The notes under the pieces are model-generated. The model made no database searches. It saw only the letters and a list, made by a program, of their open reading frames with translations, and had not been told where the DNA came from. From positions 1 to 64,000 of the forward strand of contig NZ_JMCB01000009.1 in NCBI RefSeq assembly GCF_000737315.1: DNA of 64,000 bases, in the 5' to 3' direction. Every line of letters begins with the position of its first letter. The stretch's first letter is position 1. A program made the translations under genes and the position numbers. This DNA is from Hyalangium minutum (GTDB lineage Bacteria; Myxococcota; Myxococcia; Myxococcales; Myxococcaceae). Below are positions 8,829 through 60,644 of the stretch, in pieces.

Positions 8829-11381
8829 GTGGAGACTGCGGTGGCTCAGACTGCGAACCCGACAACGGTCTCGCTGAAAGAAGAGTTCGGACCCATCTCC
8901 CGGTGGCTGGGGGCTCGCTACTTCGACGGGGTCCACTTCCCCCCGGAGTCCGAGGACGAGCTGCGCGCCCTCCACGCCAAGGGGTTCGTGGTCCACGTCA
9001 TGCGCTCCACGGCGTGGATCAACTTCCTCTACATCGCCTGGGCCATGGTGCGCCGCGCCCTGCCCCCCATCCGCGCCGTGGTCAACCTGCGGCCCTGGTT
9101 CACCCGCCCCTTCCGCAAGACGGCCCAGCGCGGTGACTTCGATGTGCGCTTCACCTATGCCCGGCGCCACGGCGGCAGCGGCCTCATCTTCCTGAAGAAG
9201 ACGGCGCTGATGAACCCCTCGGGCAAGGACATCGAGGAGAACCCCTTCCCCGCCCTGGTGGCCATGGCTCGCAAGGGGGACCGCAACGTCCTGCTCGTGC
9301 CCGAGCTGTTCGTCTGGGAGAAGCGCTCCGCGCGCATCAAGCCCGGCATCATGGACATCGTGTTCGGCAGCCCCGAGGCCCCGGGCTTCCTGCACTCCAT
9401 GGTGGCCTTCTTCCGCAACTACCGCCGCGCCCAGTTCCGCATGGGCGAGCCCATCGATCTGCAGCGCTTCATCGCGGAGAACCCTCAGGACTCGGACGAA
9501 GTCATCGCTCGCAAGGTGCGCAGCGCCCTGCACCACCACCTGGCCCGTGAGACGCGCGCCGTGTTCGGACCGCCTCTCAAGCCCACCGAGCGGCTCATCG
9601 ACGAGACGATGCGCGATCGCCAGCTGCACAAGGCCCTGGATGCGCACGCCGCCTCCGTGAGCCGCCGCCCCGAGAGCGTCTACCGCGAGGCTCGCCGCAA
9701 CCTGGCCGCCATTGCCGCGCGTCCGAGCCCCACCACCCTGGCCTTCGCCTCGCCCGTGCTGGACTGGATCTTCCAGCGCATCTACGACGGCATCGAAGTG
9801 GATGAGGGCGGCCTCCACCGCGCCCTCAAGCAGGCCGGCCACGCGCCCATCGTCCTGTGCCCCTCGCACAAGAGCCACGTGGACTACCTGGTGCTCAGCT
9901 GGGTGCTCTGGAACCGCGGCTATGCCGTGCCCCTGGTGGCCGCCGGCGCCAACCTGTCGTTCTGGCCGCTCGGGCCCTTCCTGCGGCGCTGCGGCGCGTT
10001 CTTCCTGCGGCGCTCGTTCAAGGGCGACCCGATCTACTCCGAGTCCTTCCAGGCCTACGTGCGCAAGCTGGTGCTCGACGGCGTGCACCAGGAGTTCTTC
10101 CCCGAGGGCGGCCGCTCCCGCACCGGCAAGCTGCTGCCCCCCAAGCTGGGCATGTTCACCTGGCAAGTCGACGCCGTGCTGGGCGGCGCTCGCAAGGATC
10201 TGACCTTCGTCCCCGTCTCCATCGACTACGAGAAGGTGGTGGAGTCCGGCAGCTACTCGAAGGAACTGGCCGGTGGGGAGAAGAAGCCCGAGGACCTCAA
10301 GGCCCTGCTCAGCGCTCCCAAGGTGCTCACCGCGCGCTATGGCCGCATCCACCTGACCTTCGATGAGCCGCTCTCGCTCGCGGAGCTCATGAAGAGCCGC
10401 GGACTCACCCCGGGCGAGCCGGTGAACGAAGAGCAGAAGAAGGGCCTGGTGCGTGCGCTCGGCAACCGGGTCATGTACGGCATCAGCAAGGTGTCCACCG
10501 TGACGCCGCACGCCCTGGTGAGCGCGGCCCTGCTGGCCCACCGCCGCCGCGGCATTACTCAGCGCGAAGTGACGGATCGCATCACCCTGCTCCGCCGCAT
10601 CGCCGAGGAGGAGCGCACCCCGCTCTCCAAGACGCTGCAGAACGCCCCGAGCGATCCCGAGACGATGGGCGCCATCCGCGACGCGCTCCAGACGTTCCGC
10701 GCGGATGGGATGCTCCGTACCCAGCAGGCTCGCGGCGAGGTCATCTACCAGCCCGAGGACGAGCGCCGCGCGGAGCTGTCCTTCTACAAGAACACCTTGA
10801 TGAACCTGGTGGTGCCTCGCAGCCTGGTGGCCAATGCGCTGCTGGCCGGGGCCCCCGCCTCCTACGAGATCGTAAAGGGCCGCGCGCTGTTCCTCTCGCG
10901 CCTCTTCAAGGTGGAGTTCATCTACCGGGTGGGTGCCACCTTCGACACCATCTTCTCGGAGACGGTGGAGGCCCTGGTGCGCCTGGGCCTCGTGCTGCGC
11001 TCGGATGACACCCTCCAGCTCGCCCCCGAGGCCCATGCCCGGCCCGCACTGGAGTTCCTGGCGGACCTGCTGCGCGATTACCTGGAGTCCTACCTGCTGG
11101 CCGCGATGACGCTGAAGGACGTGGCCGACGGCATGGTCTCGGACCGCAAGGCCTTCGTGAAGTTCGCGATGGAGACCGGCCGCGCTGAGTTCCATGCCGG
11201 CCGCATCGGTGCCGCCGAGTCCCTGGCCAAGACGACGCTGGAGAACGCCGTGGCGTACCTCATCGACCAGAAGTACCTCGTCGAGGAGGACAAGAAGCTC
11301 AAGCTGGGCCCGGCCGGTACCGAGCCCAGCGCGCGGGAGCAGCTCGCCAACGACATCCGCCTCTACCTGCAGCGCACGTGA
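8829..11381 (+). CDS. plsB: Glycerol-3-phosphate O-acyltransferase
   Basis: HX4D motif (CPSHKSHVDY), GAFFLRRSF and FFPEGGRSRTGK blocks; GGAGG RBS before GTG. Confidence 0.88.
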   Translation: METAVAQTANPTTVSLKEEFGPISRWLGARYFDGVHFPPESEDELRALHAKGFVVHVMRSTAWINFLYIAWAMVRRALPPIRAVVNLRPWFTRPFRKTAQRGDFDVRFTYARRHGGSGLIFLKKTALMNPSGKDIEENPFPALVAMARKGDRNVLLVPELFVWEKRSARIKPGIMDIVFGSPEAPGFLHSMVAFFRNYRRAQFRMGEPIDLQRFIAENPQDSDEVIARKVRSALHHHLARETRAVFGPPLKPTERLIDETMRDRQLHKALDAHAASVSRRPESVYREARRNLAAIAARPSPTTLAFASPVLDWIFQRIYDGIEVDEGGLHRALKQAGHAPIVLCPSHKSHVDYLVLSWVLWNRGYAVPLVAAGANLSFWPLGPFLRRCGAFFLRRSFKGDPIYSESFQAYVRKLVLDGVHQEFFPEGGRSRTGKLLPPKLGMFTWQVDAVLGGARKDLTFVPVSIDYEKVVESGSYSKELAGGEKKPEDLKALLSAPKVLTARYGRIHLTFDEPLSLAELMKSRGLTPGEPVNEEQKKGLVRALGNRVMYGISKVSTVTPHALVSAALLAHRRRGITQREVTDRITLLRRIAEEERTPLSKTLQNAPSDPETMGAIRDALQTFRADGMLRTQQARGEVIYQPEDERRAELSFYKNTLMNLVVPRSLVANALLAGAPASYEIVKGRALFLSRLFKVEFIYRVGATFDTIFSETVEALVRLGLVLRSDDTLQLAPEAHARPALEFLADLLRDYLESYLLAAMTLKDVADGMVSDRKAFVKFAMETGRAEFHAGRIGAAESLAKTTLENAVAYLIDQKYLVEEDKKLKLGPAGTEPSAREQLANDIRLYLQRT

Positions 11382-11399
11382 GCCCCCGCCGGGCCCAGC

Positions 11400-11837
11400 T
11401 CACAGGCCCGTGCGGAACGGGACGCGGACTTCCTCGGTGAGCGCGTTGCCCTCGTAGTCGGAGAGGATCGTCCGCAGCACCAGCGTGAAGGAGGCATTCG
11501 GGGTGAACGCCCCCGAGGTCGCCCTCACCTTCACGGTGTACGGGATGTCTCCACCCTCGACGTTCCCAGAGCCATCGGTCGGCGCGGGCACGGTGATGGT
11601 CAGGGGCACCTCGTCGCGGCCGGAGAACACGGCGATCCCGGGGCGCAACGTGCGCACATCCATGAACTCCGAGAAGGTGATCTCCAAGCTCCCGTCCGAG
11701 GCGATCTGCCCGCTGGCAACGGGCTCGGTGGACTGGACCTCGGGCGGATCCGTATCCCGGACGGCGAGCACCGGATCGCCGGGATCCAAGCACCCGGCGA
11801 GGCTCAGGAAGGCACAGGCGGTCAGCAGGCGGCGCAT
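11400..11837 (-). CDS. Lipoprotein with a bacterial Ig-like (SbsA/Big_5-type) domain
   Basis: Lipobox LSLAGC after MRRLL; PPEVQSTEP...LEITFSEFMD pattern. ATG overlaps the TGA of the cytochrome gene at 11837. Confidence 0.75.
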   Translation of the reverse strand: MRRLLTACAFLSLAGCLDPGDPVLAVRDTDPPEVQSTEPVASGQIASDGSLEITFSEFMDVRTLRPGIAVFSGRDEVPLTITVPAPTDGSGNVEGGDIPYTVKVRATSGAFTPNASFTLVLRTILSDYEGNALTEEVRVPFRTGL

Positions 11838-18801: not shown

Positions 18802-19224
18802 ATGATCCGTGAAGAAGCACAGCGCCTGGCGCAGGCGTTCCTGGCAGCCACAGAAAACCCCAACAGCCCGGGCCTCAACCCGCAGGGCTTTGGCGGTGTC
18901 GCCATCGAGGGCGCCCAGCTCTACTTCGAGTGGCACGACAAAGAGCAAGCGCTCGAGTGCAGCGCGCTCATCTACAAGTTCCGCGACGCCCCCAAGCCGG
19001 GCATCGTCGAGGGCTTCCAGGCCGAGCAGAAGGCTGGCACGGACACCGGCGGCGGCGCCGTGGACTACGAGCCGGAGAACAAGTCGCTCTTCCTGAGCCG
19101 CACGTACACGCAGGCCCCTCCGCAGACGGCCTTCATCGAGGACATGAAGCGGCTGATGAGGGCCAGCCTGGTCTGGGGTGACGAGGTCCTCGACCGCGTG
19201 GCCTCGAAGGTCTTCAAGACCTAG
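18802..19224 (+). CDS. CesT/Tir-chaperone-like (type III secretion chaperone fold) protein, copy 1
   Basis: 140 aa with an alpha-beta-beta-beta-alpha-beta-beta-alpha pattern ending in an amphipathic helix; GGAGA RBS 7 nt before ATG. Family call is from memory of similar myxobacterial proteins. Confidence 0.6.
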   Translation: MIREEAQRLAQAFLAATENPNSPGLNPQGFGGVAIEGAQLYFEWHDKEQALECSALIYKFRDAPKPGIVEGFQAEQKAGTDTGGGAVDYEPENKSLFLSRTYTQAPPQTAFIEDMKRLMRASLVWGDEVLDRVASKVFKT

Positions 19225-19325
19225 CCTCTGACGCCCTTAAAAACACCCAGGTGGAAACTTTCCCACGGCTGGGTGCGATAATTCCCACCAAGAGCATCAC
19301 ACCCCGACGATTTAGGAGTCCCCGA

Positions 19326-20288
19326 ATGAACCCGATCGAGCGCGGCCGGAACCTCATCAACCAGGTGCGCACCGGCGCCGAGAAGGCAGTCGACAAGGTA
19401 GAGACCGCGGTGGCGAAGACCGCGGACAAGGTGCACGACGTCGCCGTGGCCACGGGCAACAAGGTCCACAACGTGGTGGACGGCTTCGAGAACGCGGCCG
19501 TCGGCGGCGCCAAGGCCGTCCAGGGCTTCTTCGGCGGCGGCAACCAGCCGGACAAGGTGCATGACGGGCAGTTCGTGGGCGCTGGCGGGAAGACGTTCCC
19601 CCCCGGCACGCCGCTGAAGGACATCCCCGGCGTCACCCCGAAGAACAACCCGAACCCGTCCTCGACGATCGTCTACGTCAACGGCATCAACACCCCCAAG
19701 GACGCCCAGTTCAGCAGCCTCGAGTCCATCGCGGAGACGACGGGCTCGAAGGTGGTGGGCATCCACAACGCCACCGAGGGCATGGGCGCGGACCTGGCCC
19801 AGTGCGTGAAGGACAAGCTGGACAAGGGCACCAACCCGGCGGTGGATACGCTGGCGGACACGCTCTACAACGAGCTCAAGGCGGGCCGCAGCGTGCACGT
19901 GATGGCGCACAGCCAGGGTGGCCTGATCACCAGCCGCGCGTTGGGCCACGTGTACGACCGGCTGCGCTTGGAAGATGGGATGTCCAAGGAGCAGGCGCAG
20001 AAGACCATGAGCAAGCTGGAGGTGGAGACCTTCGGCGCTGCGGCCACGCGCTACCCGGACGGCCCGCAGTACGTGCACTACGTGAACCGCGGCGACCCGG
20101 TCCCGGGTCTCTTCGGCCTGGGCCCTGTCGCCGACAAGTGGAACCCGATCGCCGACGGTGGCAAGAACTCGCAGGTGCACCACTTCAACGACTTCAAGCT
20201 CAACCCGATCGCCGCTCACGGCTTCGAGTCCATCTACCTGAAGCACCGCGTGCCCTTCGACCAGGCTCGGGCTGGCAACTTCAACTGA
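19326..20288 (+). CDS. Lipase/phospholipase-like alpha/beta hydrolase, putative secreted effector
   Basis: VYVNGINT, AHSQGG nucleophile elbow, VETFGAA, VNRGDPVP (Asp) and AHGFESIY (His). No Sec signal; TAGGAG RBS before ATG 19326. Confidence 0.72.
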   Translation: MNPIERGRNLINQVRTGAEKAVDKVETAVAKTADKVHDVAVATGNKVHNVVDGFENAAVGGAKAVQGFFGGGNQPDKVHDGQFVGAGGKTFPPGTPLKDIPGVTPKNNPNPSSTIVYVNGINTPKDAQFSSLESIAETTGSKVVGIHNATEGMGADLAQCVKDKLDKGTNPAVDTLADTLYNELKAGRSVHVMAHSQGGLITSRALGHVYDRLRLEDGMSKEQAQKTMSKLEVETFGAAATRYPDGPQYVHYVNRGDPVPGLFGLGPVADKWNPIADGGKNSQVHHFNDFKLNPIAAHGFESIYLKHRVPFDQARAGNFN

Positions 20289-20289
20289 G

Positions 20290-20814
20290 ATGGCGACTGC
20301 CCCTCGAAGTGGACTGGCAGGCCTCCTGATGTCGTGGGTGGCCGGCCTGGCACCTGCAGCGGCCGAGGGCGCTCCCATGACCCGGGAGGCCGCCCAGCGG
20401 CTGGTGCAGATCTTCGTCCGGCCCGAGGCCAATCCGCAGAGCCCTGGACTCAACGCCGAGGGCTTTGGCGGGCTGGTGATGGGCGGGGCGCAGCTCTACT
20501 TCGAGTGGCATGAGGACACGAAGGCGCTGGAGTGCAGCGCCCTCGTGTACAAGTTCCATGAGCCGCCCAAGCCGGGCGTCATCGAGACCTTCCAAGCCGA
20601 GGAGAAGGAAGGCACGGACACCGGCGGCGGCACCGTGGACTACGAGCCCGAGAACCGCGGGCTCTACCTGAGCCGGACCTATACGCAGGTGCCGGAAGAG
20701 CGGGCCTTCACCAAGGACATGAAGAAGCTGATGAAGGCCAGCCTCAAGTGGAGCGACGAGGTGCTGGACCGCGTGGCGTCGCGCGTGTTCCACCCCGAGG
20801 AGCTCACCAAGTAG
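20290..20814 (+). CDS. CesT-like protein, copy 2, with a signal-peptide-like N-terminal extension
   Basis: 94 of 140 residues identical to copy 1 by hand alignment; ATG 1 nt after the lipase stop; alternative start at 20377. Confidence 0.6.
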   Translation: MATAPRSGLAGLLMSWVAGLAPAAAEGAPMTREAAQRLVQIFVRPEANPQSPGLNAEGFGGLVMGGAQLYFEWHEDTKALECSALVYKFHEPPKPGVIETFQAEEKEGTDTGGGTVDYEPENRGLYLSRTYTQVPEERAFTKDMKKLMKASLKWSDEVLDRVASRVFHPEELTK

Positions 20815-38593: not shown

Positions 38594-39796
38594 CTACAGG
38601 CTCCGGCCCGCCTTGAGCAGGGCCTCGCCCACGTGCGAGCGGATCTCCTCCACCCGCGCATCCCAGCTCTCGTGGAAGATGCGCTCGGCGCGCTCGCGGC
38701 TGGGGCCTGCGCCCTCGGCGAGGCACTCGTCCACCTTGCGCACGAAGTCCTCCGTCGAGGTGGCCACCTTGCACAGCCCCACCTTGCGCACCTCGGGGAT
38801 GTCCGTGGACACCACCGGGAGCCCCGCAGCCAGGTACTCGCGCACCTTCAGCGGGTTGGCGTTGAGCGTCAGCTCGTTCACTGTGAACGGCATCAGCGCC
38901 ACATCGAACGCCTTGCAGTAGCCCGGCAGGCTCGCGTACGGCTGGCGCCCTAGGAAGTGGATGTTCGGCACCGCCTTCATCGCCGTCACGTCGCAGTCCG
39001 GCGCCACCTTGCCGATCACCACCACCGAGCCTTCGGGGTGCGCCTTCGCCGTGGCGATGATCGCCTCCTGGTCCACCCAGTCCGCCATCAGCCCGAAGAA
39101 GCCGATGATGGGCCCCGGCAGCTTCGCGATGTCCTCCGGAACCTGCGTGGCCTCGTCACACGCCTTCACGAAGTGCTGGTAGTCCACCCCGTGCCGCACC
39201 AGCACCGTGTTCGGGTTCACCTTGGCCTTGTTCTCGCGCAGGCGCTCGGCGGAGGTGATGACCAGATCCGCCCGGCGCAGCAGCCGCTCCTCCAGCTCCG
39301 CGATGTGGCGCCCGTTGGTGTCGCTGAACGCGGAGAACTCGTCCACGCAGTGGTAGACGACGAACTCCTCGCCCAGCGTGCCCGACACCGGCGCCGAGGC
39401 CGGCAGGAACGACCACGAGATGGGCCGCCGGAAGTTCAGCTTCTTCATCGCCCGCTTCACCTGGAGCCGCAGCAGCTCCCGGTTCGTCGACCGCACCGCC
39501 TCCGAGCCGTAGAACGGGATGGCCAGCGGCGCCAGCACGAAGAGGTTGGGCTCCACCTCTCGGATGCCCTCGGTGAAGGAGGACAGCTTGCGCCAGATGC
39601 GCTGCAGATCGTGCGTGTTCGCCTTGGGCGCCCGGTTGCCGATGCTGTTCACCCACAGCACGCGGTTCTCCCGCGAGAGGATCCGCATGATGTGGACCTT
39701 GGACAGCGGATCGCCGTCCCAGTCGTTGGAGAACACCACCAGGTCCCGTCCGCGCAGGGCCCGGCGGGTCAGATCCATGTCTTCACTGCGCCGCAT
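38594..39796 (-). CDS. exoP: Glycosyltransferase (GT-B), spore-coat cluster
   Basis: SKVHIMRILS, YHCVDEF, IGFFG and NPLKVREYLAAGLPVVST; last gene of the deacetylase-wzx-acetyltransferase-GT-GT block; alternative start at 39778. Confidence 0.82.
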   Translation of the reverse strand: MRRSEDMDLTRRALRGRDLVVFSNDWDGDPLSKVHIMRILSRENRVLWVNSIGNRAPKANTHDLQRIWRKLSSFTEGIREVEPNLFVLAPLAIPFYGSEAVRSTNRELLRLQVKRAMKKLNFRRPISWSFLPASAPVSGTLGEEFVVYHCVDEFSAFSDTNGRHIAELEERLLRRADLVITSAERLRENKAKVNPNTVLVRHGVDYQHFVKACDEATQVPEDIAKLPGPIIGFFGLMADWVDQEAIIATAKAHPEGSVVVIGKVAPDCDVTAMKAVPNIHFLGRQPYASLPGYCKAFDVALMPFTVNELTLNANPLKVREYLAAGLPVVSTDIPEVRKVGLCKVATSTEDFVRKVDECLAEGAGPSRERAERIFHESWDARVEEIRSHVGEALLKAGRSL

Positions 39797-40856
39797 GTTG
39801 CGTCTCCCGTGTCGAAATCCAATCCGTAAGCCCCGGTGCCGCGAGCTCCTCGTACAGACGGAGCAGCACGGGACCGGCGTCCGGCTGAGCCACCTGCGCG
39901 GGTCCCTCCGCGAGCGCCTGCCGGATCCTCAGCGCCAGATCCGGCGGGTGGCCGCCCCGGAACAAAAAGGTGCCCTCGGGCCGGGCGCACACGTCGCTGG
40001 CCACGCAGGGCACTCCGAGCGTCAGCGCCTCGCGGACGGAGACCGAGTCCCCGTCATGCGTCGTGGGCCGGATGAACACATCGCACCGTGACAACAGACC
40101 GAGCGCCTCGTCGTGGTTCAGCTCGCCCAGATCCTCCAGGAGCGGCGCCACGTGCGTCTCGCGGGCATCCCGCGCGAACTCCGGCGTCCGCGTCCCAGGC
40201 CCGAACACCGCGAGCCCCACGCCCGGCAGCTCGTTCGCCAGCATCCGGAGCGCGCGGAACATCTGCATGCGCCCGTAGACCGGCGACGGGTGGTGCGCCA
40301 TGGCCAGCAGCGGAGAGCGCCGGGCCCTCGCCAGTTCCACGGCGGCAGTCACCGGCCCGGGCCGCACCTGCGAGGCGCAGAAGGCCGGCTGCACGAGGAT
40401 CTTCTCGGAAGGCACTCCACAGCCAACGAGCGCCTCCTTCACGGCCTCGGACACCGCGATCACGCGCGAGTACCCCGCCAGCGCGGCACGGGCCATGGCT
40501 CGCCGGGCCACGGAGCCCGCGAGGAACTCCGGCAGCAGCCCCGAGTGCAGGGTGATGAACCGAGGCGCTCGAGGCCCTGGGACACCCGCCAGCGCGGCCA
40601 GCACCCAGGCCTTCGGGTTGTCACCGCTGGTGTGGACATGCACCGTCCATCCAGCGCTCAAGAATCCCGCGAGCCGCAGCCCGAACTTGGCCGGCGTGCG
40701 GACAGGGATAACGTCCGGAGCCGGCCGGCCGCCCTTTCCAATGTCCAGCACCTTCGCCTCGACGCCACGCTCGCGAAGAAATCGATGCAGTTGTTGAACG
40801 TGAATCGCCACCCCGCCATGCGGAGGTGGGTAGTCACCAATGAGAAGCACGCGCAT
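39783..40856 (-). CDS. exoO: Glycosyltransferase family 4
   Basis: YPPPHGGVAIH, HVHTSG and FIRPTTHDGDSVSVREALTLGVPCVASD. Confidence 0.82.
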   Translation of the reverse strand: MRVLLIGDYPPPHGGVAIHVQQLHRFLRERGVEAKVLDIGKGGRPAPDVIPVRTPAKFGLRLAGFLSAGWTVHVHTSGDNPKAWVLAALAGVPGPRAPRFITLHSGLLPEFLAGSVARRAMARAALAGYSRVIAVSEAVKEALVGCGVPSEKILVQPAFCASQVRPGPVTAAVELARARRSPLLAMAHHPSPVYGRMQMFRALRMLANELPGVGLAVFGPGTRTPEFARDARETHVAPLLEDLGELNHDEALGLLSRCDVFIRPTTHDGDSVSVREALTLGVPCVASDVCARPEGTFLFRGGHPPDLALRIRQALAEGPAQVAQPDAGPVLLRLYEELAAPGLTDWISTRETQHAAQ

Positions 40857-40874
40857 CAAACAAAGTCCTCGGTC

Positions 40875-41402
40875 CTACTGAAAAGTGGTCTCCGGAAGGT
40901 GCATCGACCCCAACGTCTGGCCAAGCCGCGGAGGCGGCAGCCCCATCTCCCGCTCGTAAAAAGCAATCGGATCCGAATCCTGGCGGAGCACCCGGGCCGG
41001 GACCCCGGCCACCACCGCACCCGCAGGCACGTCCTGGAGCACCACCGCGTTGGCGCCGATCACCGCGAAGTCGCCAACCTGGACGTTGCCGAGGATCTTC
41101 GCCCCCGCGCCAATGCGCACGTAGTCGCCGATCACCGGGACGCCCTCGATGCCCGACCGTCCACTGATGGTCACTTGCTGAGAGACGAGGCAGTAGCGCC
41201 CCAGCCTCGCGTTCTGGTGGATGACGACTCCGATACCGCCGTAACCCAACGCCGTGCCCTCGCCGATCTCGGCCTCATAGGGAATGTGAGAGCTGTGCAG
41301 GTAATAGATGACCTTGCGCAGCACATCCGGCAGCACAGGAACCCCGCGCAGATGCAACCTGCGCGCAAGTCGGTACCACGTCATCCCGTCCAACCCCATC
41401 AC
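40875..41402 (-). CDS. exoN: Serine O-acetyltransferase-like (left-handed beta-helix) protein
   Basis: Hexapeptide repeats, PVIGDYVRIGAGAKILG and VVAGVPAR. Confidence 0.85.
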   Translation of the reverse strand: MMGLDGMTWYRLARRLHLRGVPVLPDVLRKVIYYLHSSHIPYEAEIGEGTALGYGGIGVVIHQNARLGRYCLVSQQVTISGRSGIEGVPVIGDYVRIGAGAKILGNVQVGDFAVIGANAVVLQDVPAGAVVAGVPARVLRQDSDPIAFYEREMGLPPPRLGQTLGSMHLPETTFQ

Positions 41403-41407
41403 TCACT

Positions 41408-41435
41408 CCCGTCCCCAACCCCACCAACCCCACCC
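41408..41435 (-). other. G-tract cluster (potential G-quadruplex) just upstream of exoN
   Basis: Minus strand GGGTGGGGTTGGTGGGGTTGGGGACGGG: five runs of 3-4 G with short loops. Confidence 0.5.
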
Positions 41436-41501
41436 TGGCCCGAAGCTAGGGAGTCACCTCTGAGGAGGGAAGTCCTCCCCAAGGGTCCACTTCCCACCGC
41501 T

Positions 41502-43019
41502 TCAGCTCGCTCCCCGCGTCCGCAGCCCCGCCAGGATCCGCAGCGGCCGGATCCCCGTCGCGTAGAGCACCGCCACATACCCGATGGCGAACAGCACCCC
41601 GGTCACGGCCAGCGGCAGCGCCCGCCAAATGAAGCCCTGAGGCAGGCCCACCCAGGCGCCCACCAGGCCCGCGCGCAGCGCGAAGACACCCGCCGCCGCC
41701 GCACAGGCCGCCAGCGACGCCTTGCCCAGCTCCGCCCAGGGGATGACATCCCGGATGCGCAGCGGACGCTCTGGCGTGGACAGCGCAGCAGGCACGCGGA
41801 TCAGCAGCGTCGCCTTCCCCACCAGCTCCGCCACCGCCCACGAGGCGATGCCGCCCTTCATCCCGAAGGAGCGCACGCCCCACCAGACGAGCGGCACCGT
41901 GACCACCGCCTTGATCAGGTACGACAAGAAGATGGCGCGCGTGTAACCCCGGGCACGCAGCACACCGTCCATCGGCAGGATGGCCAGCACCACGCCCAGC
42001 ACGCTCACCCGGAAGATGGGCACCGCGGGCAGGAACTTCGCGCCAAACATCGCGGAGATGAACTCGGGCGCCGCGGCGAACAGGAACGCGGCGAACGGCA
42101 GGAACACGAAGGCCAGCTTCCCCGCGGCCTCGCGGAAAGCCCCCACGCCCTCCTCCAGCCTCCCGGCCTTCTCCAGCTCGCCCAGGCGCACCATCAGCAC
42201 CTCGCTCGTGGGCGTGTAGAGCAGCTCCACCACCGGCAACTGGAAGCAGCCCACCCGGTACAGCGCGTACAGCGCCGGGGCCACCGCGCTCGCCACCACA
42301 TAGAAGTGCGCGTTCTGCTGCGGAATGGACAGCGCCATGGCCGCCCCAAATGGCGCCGCGTACATCAGTTGCTCGCGGAAGAGCTTCCCGCTCACCAGCG
42401 GCCCCTCGCTCCCTCGGAGCGAGATGACCCACGTGGCCAGGTAGCGCAGCCCCGCATACCCCGCCACCGCGATCATCATCCCGTGCAGCGAGGCGCCGAA
42501 CAGGCACGGCAACACCATGGCCGCCGAGCGCACCGTGTCCGAGCCCAGGTACGCCACCGCCGCCGCCTTCGTCCGCCCCTGGCTGGTGAGGGCCACCTCC
42601 AGCGGGAACGAACCCAGGAGCAGCGCGGTGTAGATCGCCAGCGGCCAGCGGTAGTTCAGCAGCGCTGGGTTGGAGAACAGCCCGGCCACCGGCTCGAGCA
42701 GCCCCACCACCAGCGCCGCCGCCACCACGCCCGCCGCGGTCATGAAGAGCATCGTCTGGCCGAGGAACGGCCGCTTCTGCTCCACCCGAGGCAGGAAGTA
42801 GTAGAGGCTCTGCGCCACGCCGAACGGCAGCACGTAGTAGAGCGTCGTGGAGATCAGGAACAGCTGATAGTACGTCCCGTACTCCTCCAGGCTCAGCACC
42901 CGGGCAAGCACGAGCGGAATGGACAGCGTCAGCCCGGCCGTGAAGAGCCGCGCCAACACCAGGGGCCCGGCCTTGCCCAGGAAGGACCCGGACGCGGCGG
43001 GCGCCGAGGATGCGCTCAC
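41502..43019 (-). CDS. exoM: Wzx oligosaccharide flippase
   Basis: About 12-14 TM helices; LARVLSLEEYGTY, LKYAAPFG-like segment and YALYRVG typical of MOP/Wzx proteins. Confidence 0.87.
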   Translation of the reverse strand: MSASSAPAASGSFLGKAGPLVLARLFTAGLTLSIPLVLARVLSLEEYGTYYQLFLISTTLYYVLPFGVAQSLYYFLPRVEQKRPFLGQTMLFMTAAGVVAAALVVGLLEPVAGLFSNPALLNYRWPLAIYTALLLGSFPLEVALTSQGRTKAAAVAYLGSDTVRSAAMVLPCLFGASLHGMMIAVAGYAGLRYLATWVISLRGSEGPLVSGKLFREQLMYAAPFGAAMALSIPQQNAHFYVVASAVAPALYALYRVGCFQLPVVELLYTPTSEVLMVRLGELEKAGRLEEGVGAFREAAGKLAFVFLPFAAFLFAAAPEFISAMFGAKFLPAVPIFRVSVLGVVLAILPMDGVLRARGYTRAIFLSYLIKAVVTVPLVWWGVRSFGMKGGIASWAVAELVGKATLLIRVPAALSTPERPLRIRDVIPWAELGKASLAACAAAAGVFALRAGLVGAWVGLPQGFIWRALPLAVTGVLFAIGYVAVLYATGIRPLRILAGLRTRGAS

Positions 43020-44194
43020 GTCGGCTCCTCCAGGGAGATCTGGCTCCGCATCAGCAGCTCATTGGCCGCCCGAGTGGCGGATAAGTGGGGCCGCCGTCCC
43101 GTCACGGGGCGGCTCACCCCCAACATCGCGAAGCAGTCGTCCAACTGGCAGCCGGTGAGCGCCTCCGAGTAGTCCCCCAACATGCCGATGCTGAAGTTCT
43201 CCCACAGCACCTTGCGCTTGAGGGTGAACGGATCCCCGCCCACCCGGTTGGGCAGATCCTCGGTCGTCACCCCCGAGCGGAAGCCGTGCTGCTTCAGCAA
43301 CCGGATGACCTCCTCCGAGTACCAGCCGTTGCAGTAGGCGAAGTCCCGGACCGGGGTGCCCAGCTCCCGCTCGATGGCTTGCTTGGACTCGATGATCTCC
43401 CGCTCCATCTGCTCGGCGGGCTCCATCGTCAGCACGGTGTGCCCCAGCGTGTGCGCACCGAACTCGAAGCCATCCCGAGCCATGTGCCGCACCTCGTCCC
43501 AGTCCATGATGTCGCCCTGCTCGGGCAACAGGTTCGCGCCGCCTCCCAGTTCCTGCTCCAGCGCCTGGATGACCTCCTGCACCACACGGGCGGAGTGCTC
43601 GCCAATGAACTCATCCAGCGCGTCGGAGACCGGCCGGCTGCCGGACAAGATCGGCCCCGCCAGCTTCAGCGCAGGCTCCGGAAGCGTCGTGAAGTACGGC
43701 CTGAGCCGCCGCTTCTGCGCCACCTGGATGAGGTGGAACAGCCGATCATGATTGAACCGCCGCTTCGTGCCGATGAAGTCCGTCGGCAGATAGACAATGG
43801 CCGGTACACCCATCCGCTTCAGCAGGGGATAGGCGAACCGATACACATCCCGGTACCCGTCATCGAACGTGACGACACACAGATCCCGCTTGGTGCTCCT
43901 GCGCCCCGCCATCACGTCCACGGCATCGCCAATGGTGGCGAACTCGTAGCCCGCAGCCGCAGCCTGCTCCAGGTGCCGCCGAAACGTCTCCTTGGAGATG
44001 AGCAGCCCTGGAATGGACCGCTGCAGCTCGCCTGTCAGATCCTCCACCACCCTGTGGTAGCTGACGATCAGGAGGCGCCGCCCACCGGACTGGCTCCGGC
44101 GATACATGGCCATAGCCTTCCTGAGTCCGCTGTAGTGGAGCACTCCAGCGGCCGCTACTTTCACCGCTCTTCGCACCAACCCTCCCGCGCCCAT
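43016..44194 (-). CDS. exoL: Polysaccharide deacetylase (CE4)
   Basis: SYHRV, VTFDDGY, GAHTLGH and FAYCNG; start set at MGAGG, downstream of the sigma54 site. Confidence 0.87.
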   Translation of the reverse strand: MGAGGLVRRAVKVAAAGVLHYSGLRKAMAMYRRSQSGGRRLLIVSYHRVVEDLTGELQRSIPGLLISKETFRRHLEQAAAAGYEFATIGDAVDVMAGRRSTKRDLCVVTFDDGYRDVYRFAYPLLKRMGVPAIVYLPTDFIGTKRRFNHDRLFHLIQVAQKRRLRPYFTTLPEPALKLAGPILSGSRPVSDALDEFIGEHSARVVQEVIQALEQELGGGANLLPEQGDIMDWDEVRHMARDGFEFGAHTLGHTVLTMEPAEQMEREIIESKQAIERELGTPVRDFAYCNGWYSEEVIRLLKQHGFRSGVTTEDLPNRVGGDPFTLKRKVLWENFSIGMLGDYSEALTGCQLDDCFAMLGVSRPVTGRRPHLSATRAANELLMRSQISLEEPT

Positions 44195-44234
44195 GACCTC
44201 CCCCAATGCGCAGCCCAACCTTGTCCCGCAAGGA

Positions 44235-44250
44235 TGCAGGAGCGATGCCA
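44235..44250 (-). promoter_or_regulatory. sigma54-type (-24/-12) promoter of the exoL-P block
   Basis: Minus strand TGGCATCGCTCCTGCA with exact GG-N10-GC spacing. Confidence 0.6.
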
Positions 44251-44406
44251 AAGCCAAAACCGGCCATCTATTCACATTTTCGGCGGGTAGCAGACGAGCC
44301 ACATGCCCGGCCTGGAACATTTGGACCCCACCCTGGAAAAATTTTCCAGATCGCTAGAAAGCGACCACGCGACGGGGGAAGCCCAGCGGGGCAGAATGGA
44401 AGTTAA

Positions 44407-45501
44407 ATGCCACTCGCGCCCAGTGTCCTCCTGATCGTGTTGGCCACGGCCGCCGCGGCCCCGCAGGCCGATGCGCCTCTGTCCACCCCTCCGCTGCCGT
44501 CCAGCTCCGACACGTGCGCCACCGCCGAGGCCGACTACACCCGGGGCTTCGACGCGCTCGTCGCGGGCGATGATCACTCGGCGCTGGAGGCGTTCGAGCA
44601 CGTCCTCGCCGCCTGCCCCACCCACCCCTACGCCGGAGAGCTCGCCCGGCTCACGCGCACTCGGCTCGGCCCGGGCGCGAAGCTGGCCGAGGCGGCGCTC
44701 CTCATCGCTCCTGAAAAGCCCTCGGGCTTCGCGCGCGGAAGCCTCGTGGTCTGGCAGACCGGGCACGGCGCGACGCAAGGTGCCCTGCTGTGCGGCATCA
44801 TCGATTGTGATGGCCGCGGCTACCTCGCCGCTTCGCTCCTGGGAGCGGGAGTGGGCGCCGCAGTCTCCTTATATGCGACGCATGAGAACGGGGTGACGTC
44901 GGGCCAGTCGGCCGCCATCAACTCGGGGACGACTTGGGGCGTCTGGTATGGACTGGCCGCCACCCAGGTCTTCGACATCGACGACGAGAGCGCGCTTGCC
45001 ACCGTCATGGGCAGCACGCTGAGCCTGACCGGCGCCGGGATTGCCGTGGCCCTGCTGACCCACCCCACCGCAGGCCAGGTCTCCCTGGCCAACTCGGGCG
45101 GGCTTTGGAGCGGCGTGATCACCGCGCTGATCCTCGCCGCCGCCGGGGATGGCGAGCGGAGCGCCTTCTTCGCGATCGAGTCCGTGGTGACGGGGGTGGG
45201 CATCACCTCCTTCGCGGTGCTCTCGCAGTCCCTGCCAGTGTCTCGAGGCAGGATGCTGCTGATCGACTCGGGCGGCATCCTCGGAGGCCTGCTGGGAGCG
45301 GCCACCGTCGCCCTGCTCGGCGCGAATGACGGGGAACCCATCGCCATTGGAGCGGCGGTGGGCGCGGTCGGTGGGCTGGCCCTCACCGCCTATATCACCC
45401 GCGACTTCGACGGCCCCTCCACCCCGGCGCCAGAGGTAGCGGTCGCCCCCACCGTCATGGGCCGAGGCGGCGTGGGCCTCGCGCTGGGTGGCCGCTTCTA
45501 G
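44407..45501 (+). CDS. Exported Gly/Ala-rich membrane protein with three internal repeats
   Basis: Signal peptide; TPR-like helix pair bracketed by two Cys; three units of about 55 aa, [ST]xG[QR]xxxx[ND]SG; ends GVGLALGGRF. Confidence 0.7.
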   Translation: MPLAPSVLLIVLATAAAAPQADAPLSTPPLPSSSDTCATAEADYTRGFDALVAGDDHSALEAFEHVLAACPTHPYAGELARLTRTRLGPGAKLAEAALLIAPEKPSGFARGSLVVWQTGHGATQGALLCGIIDCDGRGYLAASLLGAGVGAAVSLYATHENGVTSGQSAAINSGTTWGVWYGLAATQVFDIDDESALATVMGSTLSLTGAGIAVALLTHPTAGQVSLANSGGLWSGVITALILAAAGDGERSAFFAIESVVTGVGITSFAVLSQSLPVSRGRMLLIDSGGILGGLLGAATVALLGANDGEPIAIGAAVGAVGGLALTAYITRDFDGPSTPAPEVAVAPTVMGRGGVGLALGGRF

Positions 45502-45556
45502 AAGGCACGGCTTTCGCTGGAGAAAGGGGCGATTTCCGGGTACGAACCCCGTCCCG

Positions 45557-46222
45557 ATGGACGCCCCTGCCCCCGCCTCGCCTCCGGCGATCGCCCTGCA
45601 TGACGTGAGCAAGCGGTATGGGCGTCATTGGGCTCTGGCGCGACTCACCTACTCGCTGCCCGCGGGCCGCTCGCTCCTCCTCACCGGCCACAACGGCTCC
45701 GGGAAGACCACGCTGCTGCGCCTGGTGGCCACCGCCCTCTCGCCCACCGCGGGCCGCGTCGAGGTGCTCGGCCGCAACACCGTCTCGGATACGAACGCAG
45801 TGCGTCAAGAGGTTGCCCTCCTTTCCCACGCCAGCTTTCTTTACGAGGACCTCACCGCGCACCAGAACCTCGTGGTGCTCGCCCGCCTGCTGGACCTGCC
45901 CTCCCCGAAGGACGTCGCCGACCAGCTGCTGACGCGCGTGGGGCTGACGCGGCGGACCGAGAGCCCCGTGCGCCAGTTCAGCGCGGGCATGCGCAAGCGC
46001 CTGGCCATCGCGCGGCTGGTGATGAAGAAGCCCGCCATGGCGCTGCTGGACGAGCCCTTCGGCGAGCTGGACCCGGCAGGCATCCAGGCCATGGAGGGCA
46101 TCATCGGCGAGCTCAAGGCCTCGGGTGTCACCGTCGTCCTGGCCACCCACCTCATCGAGCAGGGGCTGACGCTGTGTGAGGAGCGCCTTCACCTGCAAGA
46201 AGGCCGGGCGGTGCCCGCATGA
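45557..46222 (+). CDS. ccmA: Heme export ABC transporter ATP-binding subunit
   Basis: GHNGSGKTT, FSAGMRKRL and LLDEPF. Confidence 0.93.
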   Translation: MDAPAPASPPAIALHDVSKRYGRHWALARLTYSLPAGRSLLLTGHNGSGKTTLLRLVATALSPTAGRVEVLGRNTVSDTNAVRQEVALLSHASFLYEDLTAHQNLVVLARLLDLPSPKDVADQLLTRVGLTRRTESPVRQFSAGMRKRLAIARLVMKKPAMALLDEPFGELDPAGIQAMEGIIGELKASGVTVVLATHLIEQGLTLCEERLHLQEGRAVPA

Positions 46223-46914
46223 GCCGCCCCCGTCCCGCGGGCCTGCTGAAGGCCGCCGCCATCCTGCTCGGCAAGGATCTGCTCATCGAGTGGCGCACCC
46301 GGGCCCGGCTCAACGCCCTGGTCTTCTTCGCGCTCTCCACGCTGCTGCTCTTCTCGTTCGCGCTGGGTCCGGACACCAAGCTGCTCGAGCGCAACGCGGG
46401 CGGCTACCTCTGGCTGGCCATCCTCTTCGCCAGCACCCTGTCCCTGGGTGAGTCCTTCCGGGTGGAGTACGAGAACGCCTGCATGGACGGCCTGCGGCTG
46501 GCCCCGGCGGACGCTCGGGCCATCTTCCTGTCCAAGGCGGTAGGCAACACCCTGCTGCTCGTCCTGCTGGGCAGCCTGCTCATCCCCGTCATGGTGGCCC
46601 TCTACGGGGTGAAGGTGGTCCTGGGAGTAGGCGATCTGATGGCTACCCTCGTGCTTGGCTGCATGGCGCTCGCCGCCCCGGGGTGCGTGTATGCAGCCAT
46701 CGCCAATAACGCCCGAGCGAGGGACGTGCTCCTACCTCTGCTATTGTTCCCGCTGATTGTTCCGGCCCTGCTGGCCGCGACCAAGGCCATGGCGCTGGTG
46801 CTCCAGGGCGATCCGATGGATCAGCTCGGCTCTTGGTTCGGTCTGCTGGGAGGGTTCAACCTGATCTATTGGGGCTTAGGCTTCCTGCTCTTCCCGCGGG
46901 TGATCGAGGACTGA
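46219..46914 (+). CDS. ccmB: Heme export permease
   Basis: KDLLIEWR, six TM helices, LLPLLLFPL; ATGA overlap. Confidence 0.92.
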   Translation: MSRPRPAGLLKAAAILLGKDLLIEWRTRARLNALVFFALSTLLLFSFALGPDTKLLERNAGGYLWLAILFASTLSLGESFRVEYENACMDGLRLAPADARAIFLSKAVGNTLLLVLLGSLLIPVMVALYGVKVVLGVGDLMATLVLGCMALAAPGCVYAAIANNARARDVLLPLLLFPLIVPALLAATKAMALVLQGDPMDQLGSWFGLLGGFNLIYWGLGFLLFPRVIED

Positions 46915-46916
46915 CG

Positions 46917-47684
46917 ATGTTCATTCTCACCACGGCCGTACTGCCTGGAGTCATCCTGCTCCTGCTGCTCACGGTGGGCCGCAAGTACGCCCACCTGACG
47001 CTGCCGGTCTACGCGCTCATCGCCCTGGGAATCGGCCATGGGGTGGGCCTGTTCGTGGCTCCTCCGGACCGGGAGATGGGCGACGTGCAGCGCATCATGT
47101 ACGCGCATGTTCCTGCCGTGTGGGCTGCGCTGGTGGCGCTGGTGATCAACTTCGGGTGCTCGGTGGCGTACCTCTTCAAGCAGAGCTGGAGGACGGACTC
47201 GCTGGCGGAGGCCTCCGCCGAGGTGGGTCTGCTGTTCGGCGCGGTGGGGGTGCTGCTGGGCGCCATCTGGGGCCGGCCCACCTGGGGTGTGTACTGGACG
47301 TGGGATCCCCGGCTCACCACCGCCGCCATCCTCCTGGTGGCCTACATGGGCTACATGGCCCTGCGCCGCTTCGTGGAGGACCCGGACAAGCGCGCCACGT
47401 GGAGCTCCGTGGTGGGCATCATCGCCGCGGTGGACCTGCCCATCATCTGGTTCTCGGTGAAGTGGTGGCGCAGCCTGCACCAAGTGCAGTCCACGCCCCG
47501 GACGGTGGACCCGGCGTTCCAGCTTCCCCTTCGCCTCAGTTCCTACGCATTCCTGGGCCTGGCGGCCCTCTTCATCCTCCACCGCTACCGCATCGCCATG
47601 GCGGAGCGGAAGGCGGAGGTGGCCCTCCCCGAGGCGCTGCCCACGGATGGCGCCCAGCAGAACCGCACCGCGGGGGTGGCGTGA
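46917..47684 (+). CDS. ccmC: Heme chaperone loader CcmC
   Basis: IMYAHVP and the Trp-rich WGRPTWGVYWTWDPRLT motif; LHQ. Confidence 0.93.
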   Translation: MFILTTAVLPGVILLLLLTVGRKYAHLTLPVYALIALGIGHGVGLFVAPPDREMGDVQRIMYAHVPAVWAALVALVINFGCSVAYLFKQSWRTDSLAEASAEVGLLFGAVGVLLGAIWGRPTWGVYWTWDPRLTTAAILLVAYMGYMALRRFVEDPDKRATWSSVVGIIAAVDLPIIWFSVKWWRSLHQVQSTPRTVDPAFQLPLRLSSYAFLGLAALFILHRYRIAMAERKAEVALPEALPTDGAQQNRTAGVA

Positions 47685-47863
47685 TGAGCTCGCTGATGCT
47701 GTGGGCCCAGGTGGCCGCGGGAGAAGTGGGCAGCGGCCGGATTACCGGCGGCTGGGGCTATGTGTGGGCCAGCTATGGCATTACCTGGGGCGCCTTCAGC
47801 CTCTATGCGTTATCGCTGTGGCTGCGCCGACCCAAGAACCTGCCTGCAGGATCCAAGGAGTGA
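47684..47863 (+). CDS. ccmD: Heme exporter protein CcmD
   Basis: 59-aa ORF with YVWASYGIT and one TM helix between ccmC and ccmE; TGATG overlap. Confidence 0.8.
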   Translation: MSSLMLWAQVAAGEVGSGRITGGWGYVWASYGITWGAFSLYALSLWLRRPKNLPAGSKE

Positions 47864-47870
47864 ATGAGCC

Positions 47871-48359
47871 ATGACCCCTGTTACCCGTAACCGACTCATC
47901 GCCGTGGGAGCCCTGCTGGTGGCCGGTGTTGGCCTGGCCTTCGTGGCCTTCGGTAACATCGGCGAGAACCTCGTCTATTACTGGAGCCCGGCGGAGATGC
48001 TGACCCAGGGCGAGAAGGCCTACGGCCCCACCATCCGCCTGGGCGGCGTGGTGAAGCCCGGCTCCATCCAGTGGAACGCCGAGCACACCACCCTGCACTT
48101 CCAGGTGGCCACCGACCACACGCCGCAGTCCGTGGCGGTGACGGTGCGCTCCACCGAGGTGCCTCCGCAGATGTTCCGTGAGGGCATCGGCGTGGTGGTG
48201 GAGGGCACCTTCGACAAGTCGCAGGTGTTCAGCTCCAACCGGCTGATGGTGAACCACTCCAACGAGTACCGCGCGCCCAAGCCGGGCGAGGAGCCGCGCA
48301 AGTGGCAGGAGACCGTCGAGGGCTCCACCACGGCAGCGAACACGACGGGGGCGCAGTGA
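47871..48359 (+). CDS. ccmE: Heme chaperone CcmE
   Basis: YYWSP, IRLGGVV, PQMFREG and HxxxY (HSNEY). Confidence 0.93.
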   Translation: MTPVTRNRLIAVGALLVAGVGLAFVAFGNIGENLVYYWSPAEMLTQGEKAYGPTIRLGGVVKPGSIQWNAEHTTLHFQVATDHTPQSVAVTVRSTEVPPQMFREGIGVVVEGTFDKSQVFSSNRLMVNHSNEYRAPKPGEEPRKWQETVEGSTTAANTTGAQ

Positions 48360-50380: not shown

Positions 50381-50934
50381 AGAAGGGCTGGGGAATCACC
50401 TTGGGCGCCATCGCCGTGTGCGCGGCGCTGGTGCTCGTGCTCAAGGCGGGCTTTGGCCGCGACCCGCACGCGGTGCCCTTCCTGCTGTCCGGCAAGCCCG
50501 CGCCGGCCTTCACCCTGCGCTCCCTGGACAGTGGCCAGCCGGTGAGCCTGGCGCAGTTCCGCGGCCGCCCGGTGGTCATCAACTTCTGGGCCTCGTGGTG
50601 CGGGCCGTGCCGCCAGGAGCACCCGGTGCTCGACTGGGGCGCCCGGATGTTCGGCTCGCAGGCGCAGTTCCTCGGCATTGTCTTCGAGGACACCGAGGAG
50701 AACGCCCTGGGCGTCCTGCAGGAACAGGGCGCCTCCTTCCCCCAGCTGATCGATCCGCGCTCGCGCGTGTCCGTGGACTACGGCGTGTCCGGCGTGCCGG
50801 AGACGTACTTCATTACCGCGGATGGCATCATCCTGGGCAAGCACGTGGGTCCCATCGATCCGCAGTCGCTCACGGACCGAATCAAGGAGCTGGCGGCGCG
50901 ATCCGCGGGCACCGCGACGACGGCCCGGCCCTGA
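50377..50934 (+). CDS. ccmG: Thiol:disulfide interchange protein CcmG/DsbE (TlpA-like)
   Basis: VINFWASWCGPC and YGVSGVPETY; N-terminal TM helix. Confidence 0.9.
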   Translation: MKKGWGITLGAIAVCAALVLVLKAGFGRDPHAVPFLLSGKPAPAFTLRSLDSGQPVSLAQFRGRPVVINFWASWCGPCRQEHPVLDWGARMFGSQAQFLGIVFEDTEENALGVLQEQGASFPQLIDPRSRVSVDYGVSGVPETYFITADGIILGKHVGPIDPQSLTDRIKELAARSAGTATTARP

Positions 50935-50961
50935 ACCCCTGGACGCGGAGGCAAGCGAGCC

Positions 50962-52113: not shown

Positions 52114-52211
52114 GCGGCCATACAGCCAGGGGCCGGCCGGGAAGATGGGCGCACCGGTGCAGGTTTCGCTGTGCAACACTGCGCCTTGGCGCTAGGTAGA
52201 CCGCGCCCGGG

Positions 52212-52709
52212 GTGCCCCGAATGACTTCCTTCCTGCTCTCTCTCACCCTCGCCGCCGGCCTTTTGACCGGCCAGTACGCTCCCCAGAAGGGGGGCACCGA
52301 TCCTCTCGCCGATCCGGTGAAGGAAGCCCGCGTCCAGAAGCTCGGCAAGGCGCTGCGCTGCGCCGTGTGCCAGGGCGTCTCCATCGCCGACAGCCCGGCC
52401 TCCATGGCCCGCGCCCAGCTGGACACCGTGCGCGAGCTTGTCGCCGAGGGAAAGACGGACGAGGAGATCGTCGAGTACTTCGTGGAGCGCTACGGCGAGT
52501 GGGTGCTGCTCGAGCCCCCGAAGCACGGCTTCAACTGGATCGTCTGGCTGGGCCCGCTGGCGCTCGTCGCCGGAGGCCTCTTCATCATCTCGCGGCAGGT
52601 GAAGCGAGGCCCTGAGCCCGCAGCCACCACCCCTGCCGCCTCCTCGCCGCCCGCAGCCGAGGCCGAGGACCCCTACCTGCAGGCCGTGCGCCGGGAGCTC
52701 GATCAATGA
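52212..52709 (+). CDS. ccmH: Cytochrome c biogenesis protein CcmH
   Basis: LRCAVCQGVSIADS, FVERYGEWVLLEPP and one TM helix; alternative ATG at 52221. Confidence 0.92.
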   Translation: MPRMTSFLLSLTLAAGLLTGQYAPQKGGTDPLADPVKEARVQKLGKALRCAVCQGVSIADSPASMARAQLDTVRELVAEGKTDEEIVEYFVERYGEWVLLEPPKHGFNWIVWLGPLALVAGGLFIISRQVKRGPEPAATTPAASSPPAAEAEDPYLQAVRRELDQ

Positions 52710-54898: not shown

Positions 54899-54923
54899 CG
54901 GTCTCGGCTTTCAAAGAGAGGAA

Positions 54924-57208: not shown

Positions 57209-57278
57209 AGGTGCAGGACTCCCAAGCACACGGGCCCCAGGGGCCCGCGCGCGAGAAGGTGGGAACGCCCAGCGCTGG

Positions 57279-58355: not shown

Positions 58356-58403
58356 TGCCCGACCCCTTCCCGCCCGCTGCACCATGATGACTGACCCTTG
58401 AGC

Positions 58404-60619: not shown

Positions 60620-60644
60620 CTCCCCAGTTGTCCTTTTTTCAGCC

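Follow-up and report, generated by a model that had tools for sequence, protein, structure and literature searches.

A conserved lipase-like enzyme and its chaperone-fold partners form a candidate effector-chaperone module in myxobacteria

Main

Class I chaperones of type III secretion systems (T3SSs) are dimers that bind the N-terminal 20–100 residues of their effectors, and in the SycO/YopO, SycE/YopE and SycT/YopT pairs they mask the membrane-localisation domain of the effector. Here we analyse a locus of Hyalangium minutum in which the gene for a lipase-like enzyme lies between two paralogous genes, chapA and chapB, whose products are predicted to adopt this chaperone fold. The locus occupies positions 18802–20814, on the forward (+) strand, of the first 64,000 nucleotides (nt) of contig NZ_JMCB01000009.1 (assembly GCF_000737315.1); we refer to this whole stretch as the window.

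Three described systems invite comparison. In Pseudomonas aeruginosa, the signal-less, lipid-degrading effector ExoU is encoded directly upstream of SpcU, a chaperone that is small and acidic and has this fold (3tu3, 4akx), and the lipase-like gene and chapB are laid out likewise. ExoU is a patatin-like phospholipase that reaches eukaryotic cells through a complete injectisome, whereas the enzyme here is a GxSxG alpha/beta hydrolase without sequence similarity to it, has two paralogous partners and is putatively secreted. The SycN–YscB/YopN system (1xkp) also combines two related chaperone-fold proteins with one substrate. SycN–YscB is a heterodimer; for chapA and chapB we can only propose one, and A and B proteins pair with their own lipase lineages in several genera. 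Tle–Tli pairs, including that of E. cloacae (PMC10294624, 9cys), likewise place a small cognate partner behind an antibacterial GxSxG lipase, and this partner can already be active in the cytoplasm, ahead of export.

In Myxococcus, a Tad-like pilus serves to kill prey, and lysis of the prey requires an incomplete, needle-less T3SS; reviews and a primary paper of 2025 state that the effectors of this system are not known (PMC10433427, PMC12075869). Our evidence firmly supports a functional lipase/partner module of effector-chaperone type in H. minutum, and this module is a real and undescribed variant of that type. We tentatively favour the view that a conserved module of an exported lipase and its chaperone is encoded here, the needle-less T3SS being the likeliest route; we rate this as possible, somewhat short of probable.

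Results

All three forward-strand open reading frames (ORFs) predicted at 18802–20814 exist, and we define the following features, with protein lengths in amino acids (aa).

18802–19224, + strand: chapA, 140 aa, start ATG at 18802, from the ORF list
19225–19325, + strand: spacer between chapA and the lipase-like gene, 101 nt, containing the ribosome-binding site AGGAG at 19314–19318
19326–20288, + strand: lipase-like hydrolase, 320 aa, start ATG at 19326
19326–19550, + strand: N-terminal region of the lipase-like protein, residues 1–75, with low predicted local distance difference test (pLDDT) scores and 11-residue periodicity
19551–20288, + strand: lipase-like catalytic domain, B lineage, from its triad, alpha/beta hydrolase model and neighbour-joining (NJ) tree
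20290–20814, + strand: chapB, whole gene, 174 aa, start ATG at 20290
20290–20376, + strand: chapB N-terminal extension, 29 aa (MATAPRSGLAGLLMSWVAGLAPAAAEGAP), from its open frame, codon-position bias and ratio of nonsynonymous to synonymous substitution rates (dN/dS)
20377–20814, + strand: chapB chaperone-fold domain, 145 aa plus stop, from homology to chapA and conserved order

The flanking proteins share a predicted secretion-chaperone fold

An original prediction, made by a model from the letters alone, had called the two flanking proteins CesT-like paralogs that are 67% identical (94/140 by hand alignment). BLASTP gives nearly the same identity (94/138, 68%; E = 6e-75), and the CesT-like label proved right at the level of fold. 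An AlphaFold2 model for the paralogs, built on 38 homologues, has a pLDDT of 96 and a predicted template modelling (TM) score of 0.89. Its predicted topology is a-bbb-a-bb-a, that is, a helix, three strands, a helix, two strands and a long helix. The Foldseek comparison that had been proposed as a check placed class I T3SS chaperones at the top of the Protein Data Bank (PDB) matches: ExsC came first (E = 1e-5, TM-score 0.74–0.78), followed by SicP, SchA, VecA, SrcA, CesT, SigE, SycE, SpcS, SpcU and SycN/YscB (with 1xkp_B among them), and nearly all of the top 30 were chaperones of this class. Identity to the matched T3SS chaperones is 8–18%, and the paralogs had zero matches in NCBIfam or in the PDB searched by sequence (phmmer) or by profile. 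The predicted structure thus confirms a class I T3SS-chaperone fold that is invisible to sequence models. In some National Center for Biotechnology Information (NCBI) records, members of the family already bear the name 'type III secretion system chaperone', and we found no Pfam or NCBIfam model as the source of that name.

Further properties agree with the fold. Both proteins are acidic, with isoelectric points of 4.93 for chapA and 5.16 (~5.2) for the chapB domain, and they measure 15–19 kDa; chapA (140 aa) and the chapB domain (145 aa) fall within the class I chaperone range of about 120–160 aa. They therefore resemble ExsC, SicP, SchA, VecA, SrcA, CesT, SigE and SycE in size, charge and fold, and like those chaperones they adjoin a candidate substrate, which here would be the lipase-like enzyme. 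They differ in lying outside any T3SS locus and in matching no curated model. The chapA protein has no signal peptide, lipobox or N-terminal extension. Its dN/dS is 0.28, and values of 0.22–0.32 for the genes of the module indicate purifying selection.

The enzyme is signal-less, with a disordered amphipathic N-terminus

The complete catalytic triad claimed for the enzyme is present (AHSQGG, GDPVP and AHGF). Its residues, Ser196 (19911–19913), Asp257 (20094–20096) and His298 (20217–20219), are invariant in an alignment of 38 homologues. The enzyme also proved to be signal-less, as claimed: it has no hydrophobic N-terminal segment. Pfam returned only DUF676, DUF900 and Palm_thioest, all below their cut-offs; the DUF676 (PF05057) match, at 19.6 bits (E = 7e-4), falls short of the cut-off of 20.3 and covers profile positions 69–123 only. 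UniProt labels the Myxococcus xanthus orthologue as DUF676 domain-containing. A PDB sequence search with the enzyme found nothing, and Foldseek matched its model to generic alpha/beta hydrolases only (esterases, lipases and thioesterases), with the lipase effector 9cys of a type VI secretion system (T6SS) at rank 15. Judged from motifs and model, 'lipase' appears a reasonable, unproven label, with no specific lipase family assignable.

The AlphaFold model of the lipase is confident (pLDDT > 90) over most of residues 80–320, and predicts residues 1–73 to be disordered (pLDDT ~30). This N-terminus begins with a conserved leader, MNPIERGRNL, and continues as a low-confidence amphipathic helix with an 11-residue (3.67) periodicity. 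Autocorrelation of the N-region peaks at lags of 4, 7, 11, 14/15, 18 and 22, and the catalytic domain shows none of these peaks. The hendecad stretch spans 19368–19523 (residues ~15–66). Insertions and deletions of 7 and 11 residues separate the N-regions of homologues (for example P0147, P0153, P0187 and P0315), so repeat number varies; the region also has weak matches to Phasin and GvpQ. A 3.67-residue periodicity is that of amphipathic helices lying on lipid surfaces, and residues 1–75 are a candidate chaperone-binding and/or membrane-docking segment. Predicted disorder over residues 1–73 is compatible with the N-terminal binding seen in class I chaperones. The concept drawn from SycO, SycE and SycT would fit as well, with a chaperone covering an aggregation-prone, membrane-seeking N-terminus until export; membrane binding by the lipase N-terminus is something that, here, only the periodicity suggests.

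The wider enzyme family has a related layout. An exhaustive search with the catalytic domain yielded 1030 clusters of relatives, 212 of them at E ≤ 1e-30. The domain is nearly always C-terminal, behind a variable N-region of 25–130 and occasionally 270–680 residues that is enriched in Ser, Pro and Ala, and a strongly hydrophobic stretch is missing from the N-terminus of 146 of the 150 best representatives. Substrates of one-step secretion typically have this layout; it does not indicate which system. None of the trafficking domains PAAR, Rhs, VgrG and LXG was found in the long relatives scanned. All three Pseudomonas syringae export rules held for 18 of 109 family N-termini and mostly failed for the myxobacterial ones; they are not diagnostic. 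Two long relatives, P0276 (residues ~60–230) and P0470 (locus L075, 8001–9626), have an extra N-terminal domain in common, with the motif EEAGHHLDAQL...GDEGELFRRVLGGEKL and no Pfam match.

A lipase followed by a chaperone-fold gene is the conserved unit

A survey of one genome per species gave 65 loci from Myxococcaceae and Archangiaceae genera plus metagenome-assembled genomes, and we mapped their genes by tblastn. The lipase-then-chaperone-fold order is found at all 47 lipase-bearing Cystobacterineae loci, which represent about ten genera and at least three genomic positions. Arrangements around this order vary. The order chapA-lipase-chapB occurs in Hyalangium, between genes for an S8 protease and a hydrolase on one side and an RlmI-like methyltransferase and a HAD protein on the other, and in the M. 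xanthus group at another site. Corallococcus, Citreicoccus and several Myxococcus species carry lipase-chapA-chapB at the Hyalangium-type site. Pyxidicoccus has lipase-chapA at that site and lipase-chapB elsewhere; Archangium, Cystobacter and Vitiosangium have chapA alone at that site and lipase-chapB elsewhere. The constant unit is the lipase followed by a chaperone-fold gene.

An NJ tree divides lipases that precede chapA from those that precede chapB, with A and B lipases each paired with A and B partners, a pattern of co-diversification. The lipase of the window is of the B type, and lipase-then-chapB order is kept in all B-type loci. Since it is B-type and chapB lies directly downstream, chapB is its cognate partner, and chapA of the window is the 'widowed' partner of a lipase-A lineage that is absent here. 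The proposed orphan chaperone-effector unit is thereby narrowed to the lipase-B/chapB pair; the three-gene 'sandwich' is not a single unit. Orphan chapA genes are themselves under purifying selection (dN/dS 0.32), and wherever a surveyed genome gave more than one locus, it has kept an A as well as a B chaperone-fold copy, even if only one lipase lineage is left. The constraint on orphan chapA and the retention of both copies suggest a role for chapA beyond its lost neighbour, as a heterodimer partner or in serving unlinked lipase paralogues such as that of L067.

Could the three genes be functionally unconnected neighbours? Chance would accommodate the solitary chapA genes of Archangiaceae and the lipases that stand by themselves. 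It does not account for an order that recurs at 47 loci and several genomic positions, for the reappearance of the pair with overlapping genes in two distant lineages, or for the co-diversification of both families. On this conserved order, distant recurrence and co-diversification, we reject chance adjacency as highly improbable.

The distant lineages are two non-Myxococcaceae-like metagenome lineages, L069 (GC content 50%) and L073/L074 (64%). Their distant lipases (~40% identity) are followed immediately, with a 4-nt overlap, by a homologue of the chaperone-fold family, as supported by hhalign at a probability of 99.1% (E = 6e-19) and by hmmsearch (E = 3e-23 and 1e-19). Five other lipase loci (L067, L068, L070, L071 and L075) have no adjacent chaperone-fold gene. 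The neighbourhoods surveyed thus bear out the pairing in the 47 loci and the distant lineages, and do not extend it to these five. Because it is present at L069 and L073/L074 and missing at the five, the pairing must be old, and the enzyme family can do without it. Lipases with and without a partner showed no pattern in N-terminal type, in a sample that is too small. At L068, the gene after lipase P0335 (173 aa, 11008–11529) has no Pfam match and is not a homologue of the chaperone-fold family; it may be a non-homologous partner. A tblastn search of plasmids gave partial Leptospira matches only.

Several observations concern individual loci. On either side of the orphan chapA of Archangium, a small gene pair (~101 aa and 125–151 aa) occurs in duplicate on the opposite strand, at L017 (5157–5833 and 6437–7194) and L019 (5441–5818 and 6756–7133); the duplicated pair resembles a toxin-antitoxin-type module, and a DUF-like gene of 266–272 aa follows it. 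Two records labelled 'Comamonas' (L014, BNCN01000011.1, sp. KCTC 72670; and P0248, sp. JC664) contain a Myxococcus-type chapA-lipase-chapB locus with 70–77% protein identity to the window. These assemblies are probably mislabelled or contaminated.

chapB carries a constrained N-terminal extension

The chapB gene begins with an extension that chapA genes do not have and that is in frame and free of stops in all 47 chapB loci. In the 20 loci of the window's type, substitutions at codon positions 1, 2 and 3 of the extension number 845, 609 and 2512. Met30, the supposed internal start, is replaced by CTG or CTC in 10 of these 20 loci. Given the third-position bias, the loss of Met30 in half of the loci and a dN/dS of 0.12, we conclude that the extension is translated and constrained. 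The public record begins its chapB gene call at Met14 and thus probably misses 13 codons.

Across genera the extension has a hydrophobic core, L-x-W-[LIV]-[LM]-[ST]-x-[VI]-G-[LM], and behind it a proline-rich linker, which in the window is rich in both Pro and Ala; examples outside the window lie at L008 7524–7610 and L040 5947–6003. Judged by inspection, a signal-peptide reading is rejected, as conservation is position-specific and the Archangium version has no charged n-region and only ~11 hydrophobic residues. A lipobox Cys is absent. Described class I chaperones are not known to carry an N-terminal hydrophobic-plus-proline extension of this kind.

These features bear on an alternative in which the chaperone-fold proteins are immunity proteins or antidotes. 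They would neutralise the catalytic activity of the lipase and so protect the producer and its kin, delivery being by the T6SS, Kil/Tad tips, vesicles or lysis instead of the needle-less T3SS. Two chapB forms could arise from two possible starts, as with the Tli of E. cloacae: alternative starts make it both periplasmic and cytoplasmic, and Tle depends on the cytoplasmic form to function (PMC10294624). A small gene directly downstream, overlapping or 1 nt away, is the standard toxin-immunity layout; the co-diversification of lipases and partners is one to one, a producer must restrain a cytoplasmic phospholipase, and 9cys is among the fold matches of the enzyme. Other evidence speaks against immunity. 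The Tle families invoked by the original prediction do not fit: the lipase matches no Tle family model (Tle1–4), there is no T6SS linkage, and the partners are non-periplasmic and of another fold class, so nothing here corresponds to periplasmic immunity. The genes vgrG, hcp and PAAR were found neither within 10 kb of the module in the window or in M. xanthus, nor in the rest of the window. Export signals are wanting in both partners: chapA has neither signal peptide nor lipobox, and the chapB extension, with its L-x-W motif and its short Archangium form, is unlike one. Half of the loci have Leu at the would-be internal start. Nor is the module strain-variable: it is core and syntenic, and different genera have kept it. 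Orphan chapA remains under purifying selection with no adjacent toxin. On balance we consider an effector-immunity pair unlikely.

Two of the M. xanthus orthologues respond mildly to prey

The orthologues in M. xanthus DK1622 are MXAN_2036 (chapA), MXAN_2037 (lipase) and MXAN_2039 (chapB). The tags MXAN_2036, 2037, 2038 and 2039, and their RS forms, were named in no paper text that we found and appear only in the supplementary tables of PMC9548883. All three orthologues are expressed, also without prey (PMC9548883). In co-culture with Sinorhizobium meliloti, MXAN_2037 and MXAN_2039 are among the genes listed as up-regulated at 2 h (log2 fold change 1.10 and 1.14) but are missing from those at 6 h (PMC9548883, Table S2A). 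Five genes of the needle-less T3SS cluster (MXAN_2434, 2435, 2438, 2455 and 2458) show the same 2-h-only rise, and MXAN_2037 falls with MXAN_2438 and MXAN_2455 into developmental group DG5 (PMC9548883). As a link to the needle-less T3SS, co-induction at 2 h is circumstantial. High expression is seen for several small hypothetical genes of that cluster, MXAN_2438 (138 aa), MXAN_2455 (125 aa) and MXAN_2454 (PMC9548883, Tables S1–S4), which are of a size that would suit additional chaperones or substrates.

Expression without prey and membership of MXAN_2037 in DG5 can be read in favour of an intracellular lipid enzyme with its regulator. Such an enzyme would act on lipid bodies or the cell's own membranes in growth or development. 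Its amphipathic N-terminus would target it, and the chaperone-fold proteins would control its activity in the manner of non-secretory proteins with this fold. Hendecad repeats and weak Phasin/GvpQ similarity recall lipid-droplet and granule proteins, the flanking S8 protease, hydrolase, methyltransferase and HAD genes are housekeeping neighbours at a position that is syntenic across genera, partner-less lipase paralogues occur, and the fold is common to proteins outside T3SSs. Set against this are the induction of lipase and chapB by prey at 2 h and the N-regions of the wider family, which are very variable, disordered and occasionally carry large additions, as in effectors. The closest structural matches of the paralogs, ahead of the non-secretory members of the fold, are true secretion chaperones. 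We regard an intracellular role as unlikely, to about the same degree as an immunity role.

Gene starts and the surrounding window

The gene starts listed above rest on sequence inspection and homology. A GGAG at 18790 lies 8 nt before the chapA ATG, and in-frame stops precede the chapA start in most loci. For the lipase, the ORF list had begun at GTG 19251. That start did not stand up: homologues of 309–332 aa begin with MNPIERG, the gene call of the record agrees with them, and AGGAG lies 7 nt upstream, all of which favour ATG 19326. The chapB ATG sits 1 nt past the lipase stop. A scan of the chapA-lipase spacer found no consensus sigma-70 promoter or terminator and was uninformative. Elsewhere, and unrelated to the module, the window contains a polysaccharide biosynthesis and export cluster (38594–44353 and 53699–63878), with glycosyltransferases, a flippase-like protein, a deacetylase, a GNAT pair, a CofD-like protein, a sugar transferase, a Wzc-like kinase and a Wza-like exporter. 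It also contains a cytochrome c maturation (Ccm) operon at 45440–53695.

Discussion

The partner may be a chaperone for secretion, an inhibitor or immunity protein in the cytoplasm, or a regulator of an intracellular lipid enzyme, and the evidence does not split cleanly between these roles. We favour an exported effector for four reasons: true secretion chaperones are the closest structural relatives of the paralogs, the architecture of the enzyme family is effector-like, the lipase N-terminus is the kind of segment that such chaperones cover, and prey induces lipase and chapB at the same time as genes of the needle-less T3SS.

We surmise that the enzyme is made in the cytoplasm as a signal-less Ser-Asp-His hydrolase, likeliest a lipase, phospholipase or esterase. 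A chapB dimer, or possibly a chapA/chapB heterodimer, would bind it in the producer, most probably around the amphipathic N-terminal region. Bound in this way, the lipase would stay in solution, spare the membranes of the producer and remain fit for Sec-independent export, for which the needle-less T3SS is the best candidate machine. Outside the cell, the freed amphipathic region may dock the enzyme on prey membrane lipid.

Several findings weigh against export by this route. Among the sequence models, Pfam gave no match at E ≤ 10 for 38 members of the paralog family, and neither the CesT nor the YbjN model matched the paralogs. The structural search also returned proteins of the same fold without a T3SS role (2plg, 8q8o and 4h5b), at lower ranks. 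There is neither a physical nor a genetic link to the needle-less T3SS. As the original prediction had stated, the 64-kb window is free of secretion genes (Pfam found no T3SS, T6SS or Tad genes among 47 coding ORFs); the M. xanthus module likewise has no secretion genes within 10 kb, and MXAN_2036–2039 lie ~400 genes from the T3SS cluster MXAN_2434–2464. The myxobacterial lipase N-terminus is Ser-poor and acidic at position 5, unlike classical type III secretion signals. Induction of MXAN_2037 and MXAN_2039 is only ~2-fold and comes from a single study, and the five partner-less lipase loci do not show the pairing.

In a more specific version of the exported-effector reading, MXAN_2036, MXAN_2037 and MXAN_2039 would be the first substrate and chaperones assigned to the needle-less T3SS. 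The lipase would lyse prey killed by Kil, the chapB extension would dock the complex at the sorting platform or the membrane, and chapA would be the heterodimer partner. In this full form, we consider it doubtful.

Whatever the export route, the locus exemplifies a chaperone fold that accompanies a single enzyme family even in distant lineages, and one paralogue that has gained a constrained N-terminal peptide, a kind of addition that is so far unstudied. If the enzyme is intracellular, it would be a clear case of a chaperone fold regulating a lipid enzyme outside secretion. For the needle-less T3SS, a conserved, prey-induced, signal-less lipase with dedicated chaperone-fold partners offers a concrete three-gene cargo candidate in a tractable model organism.

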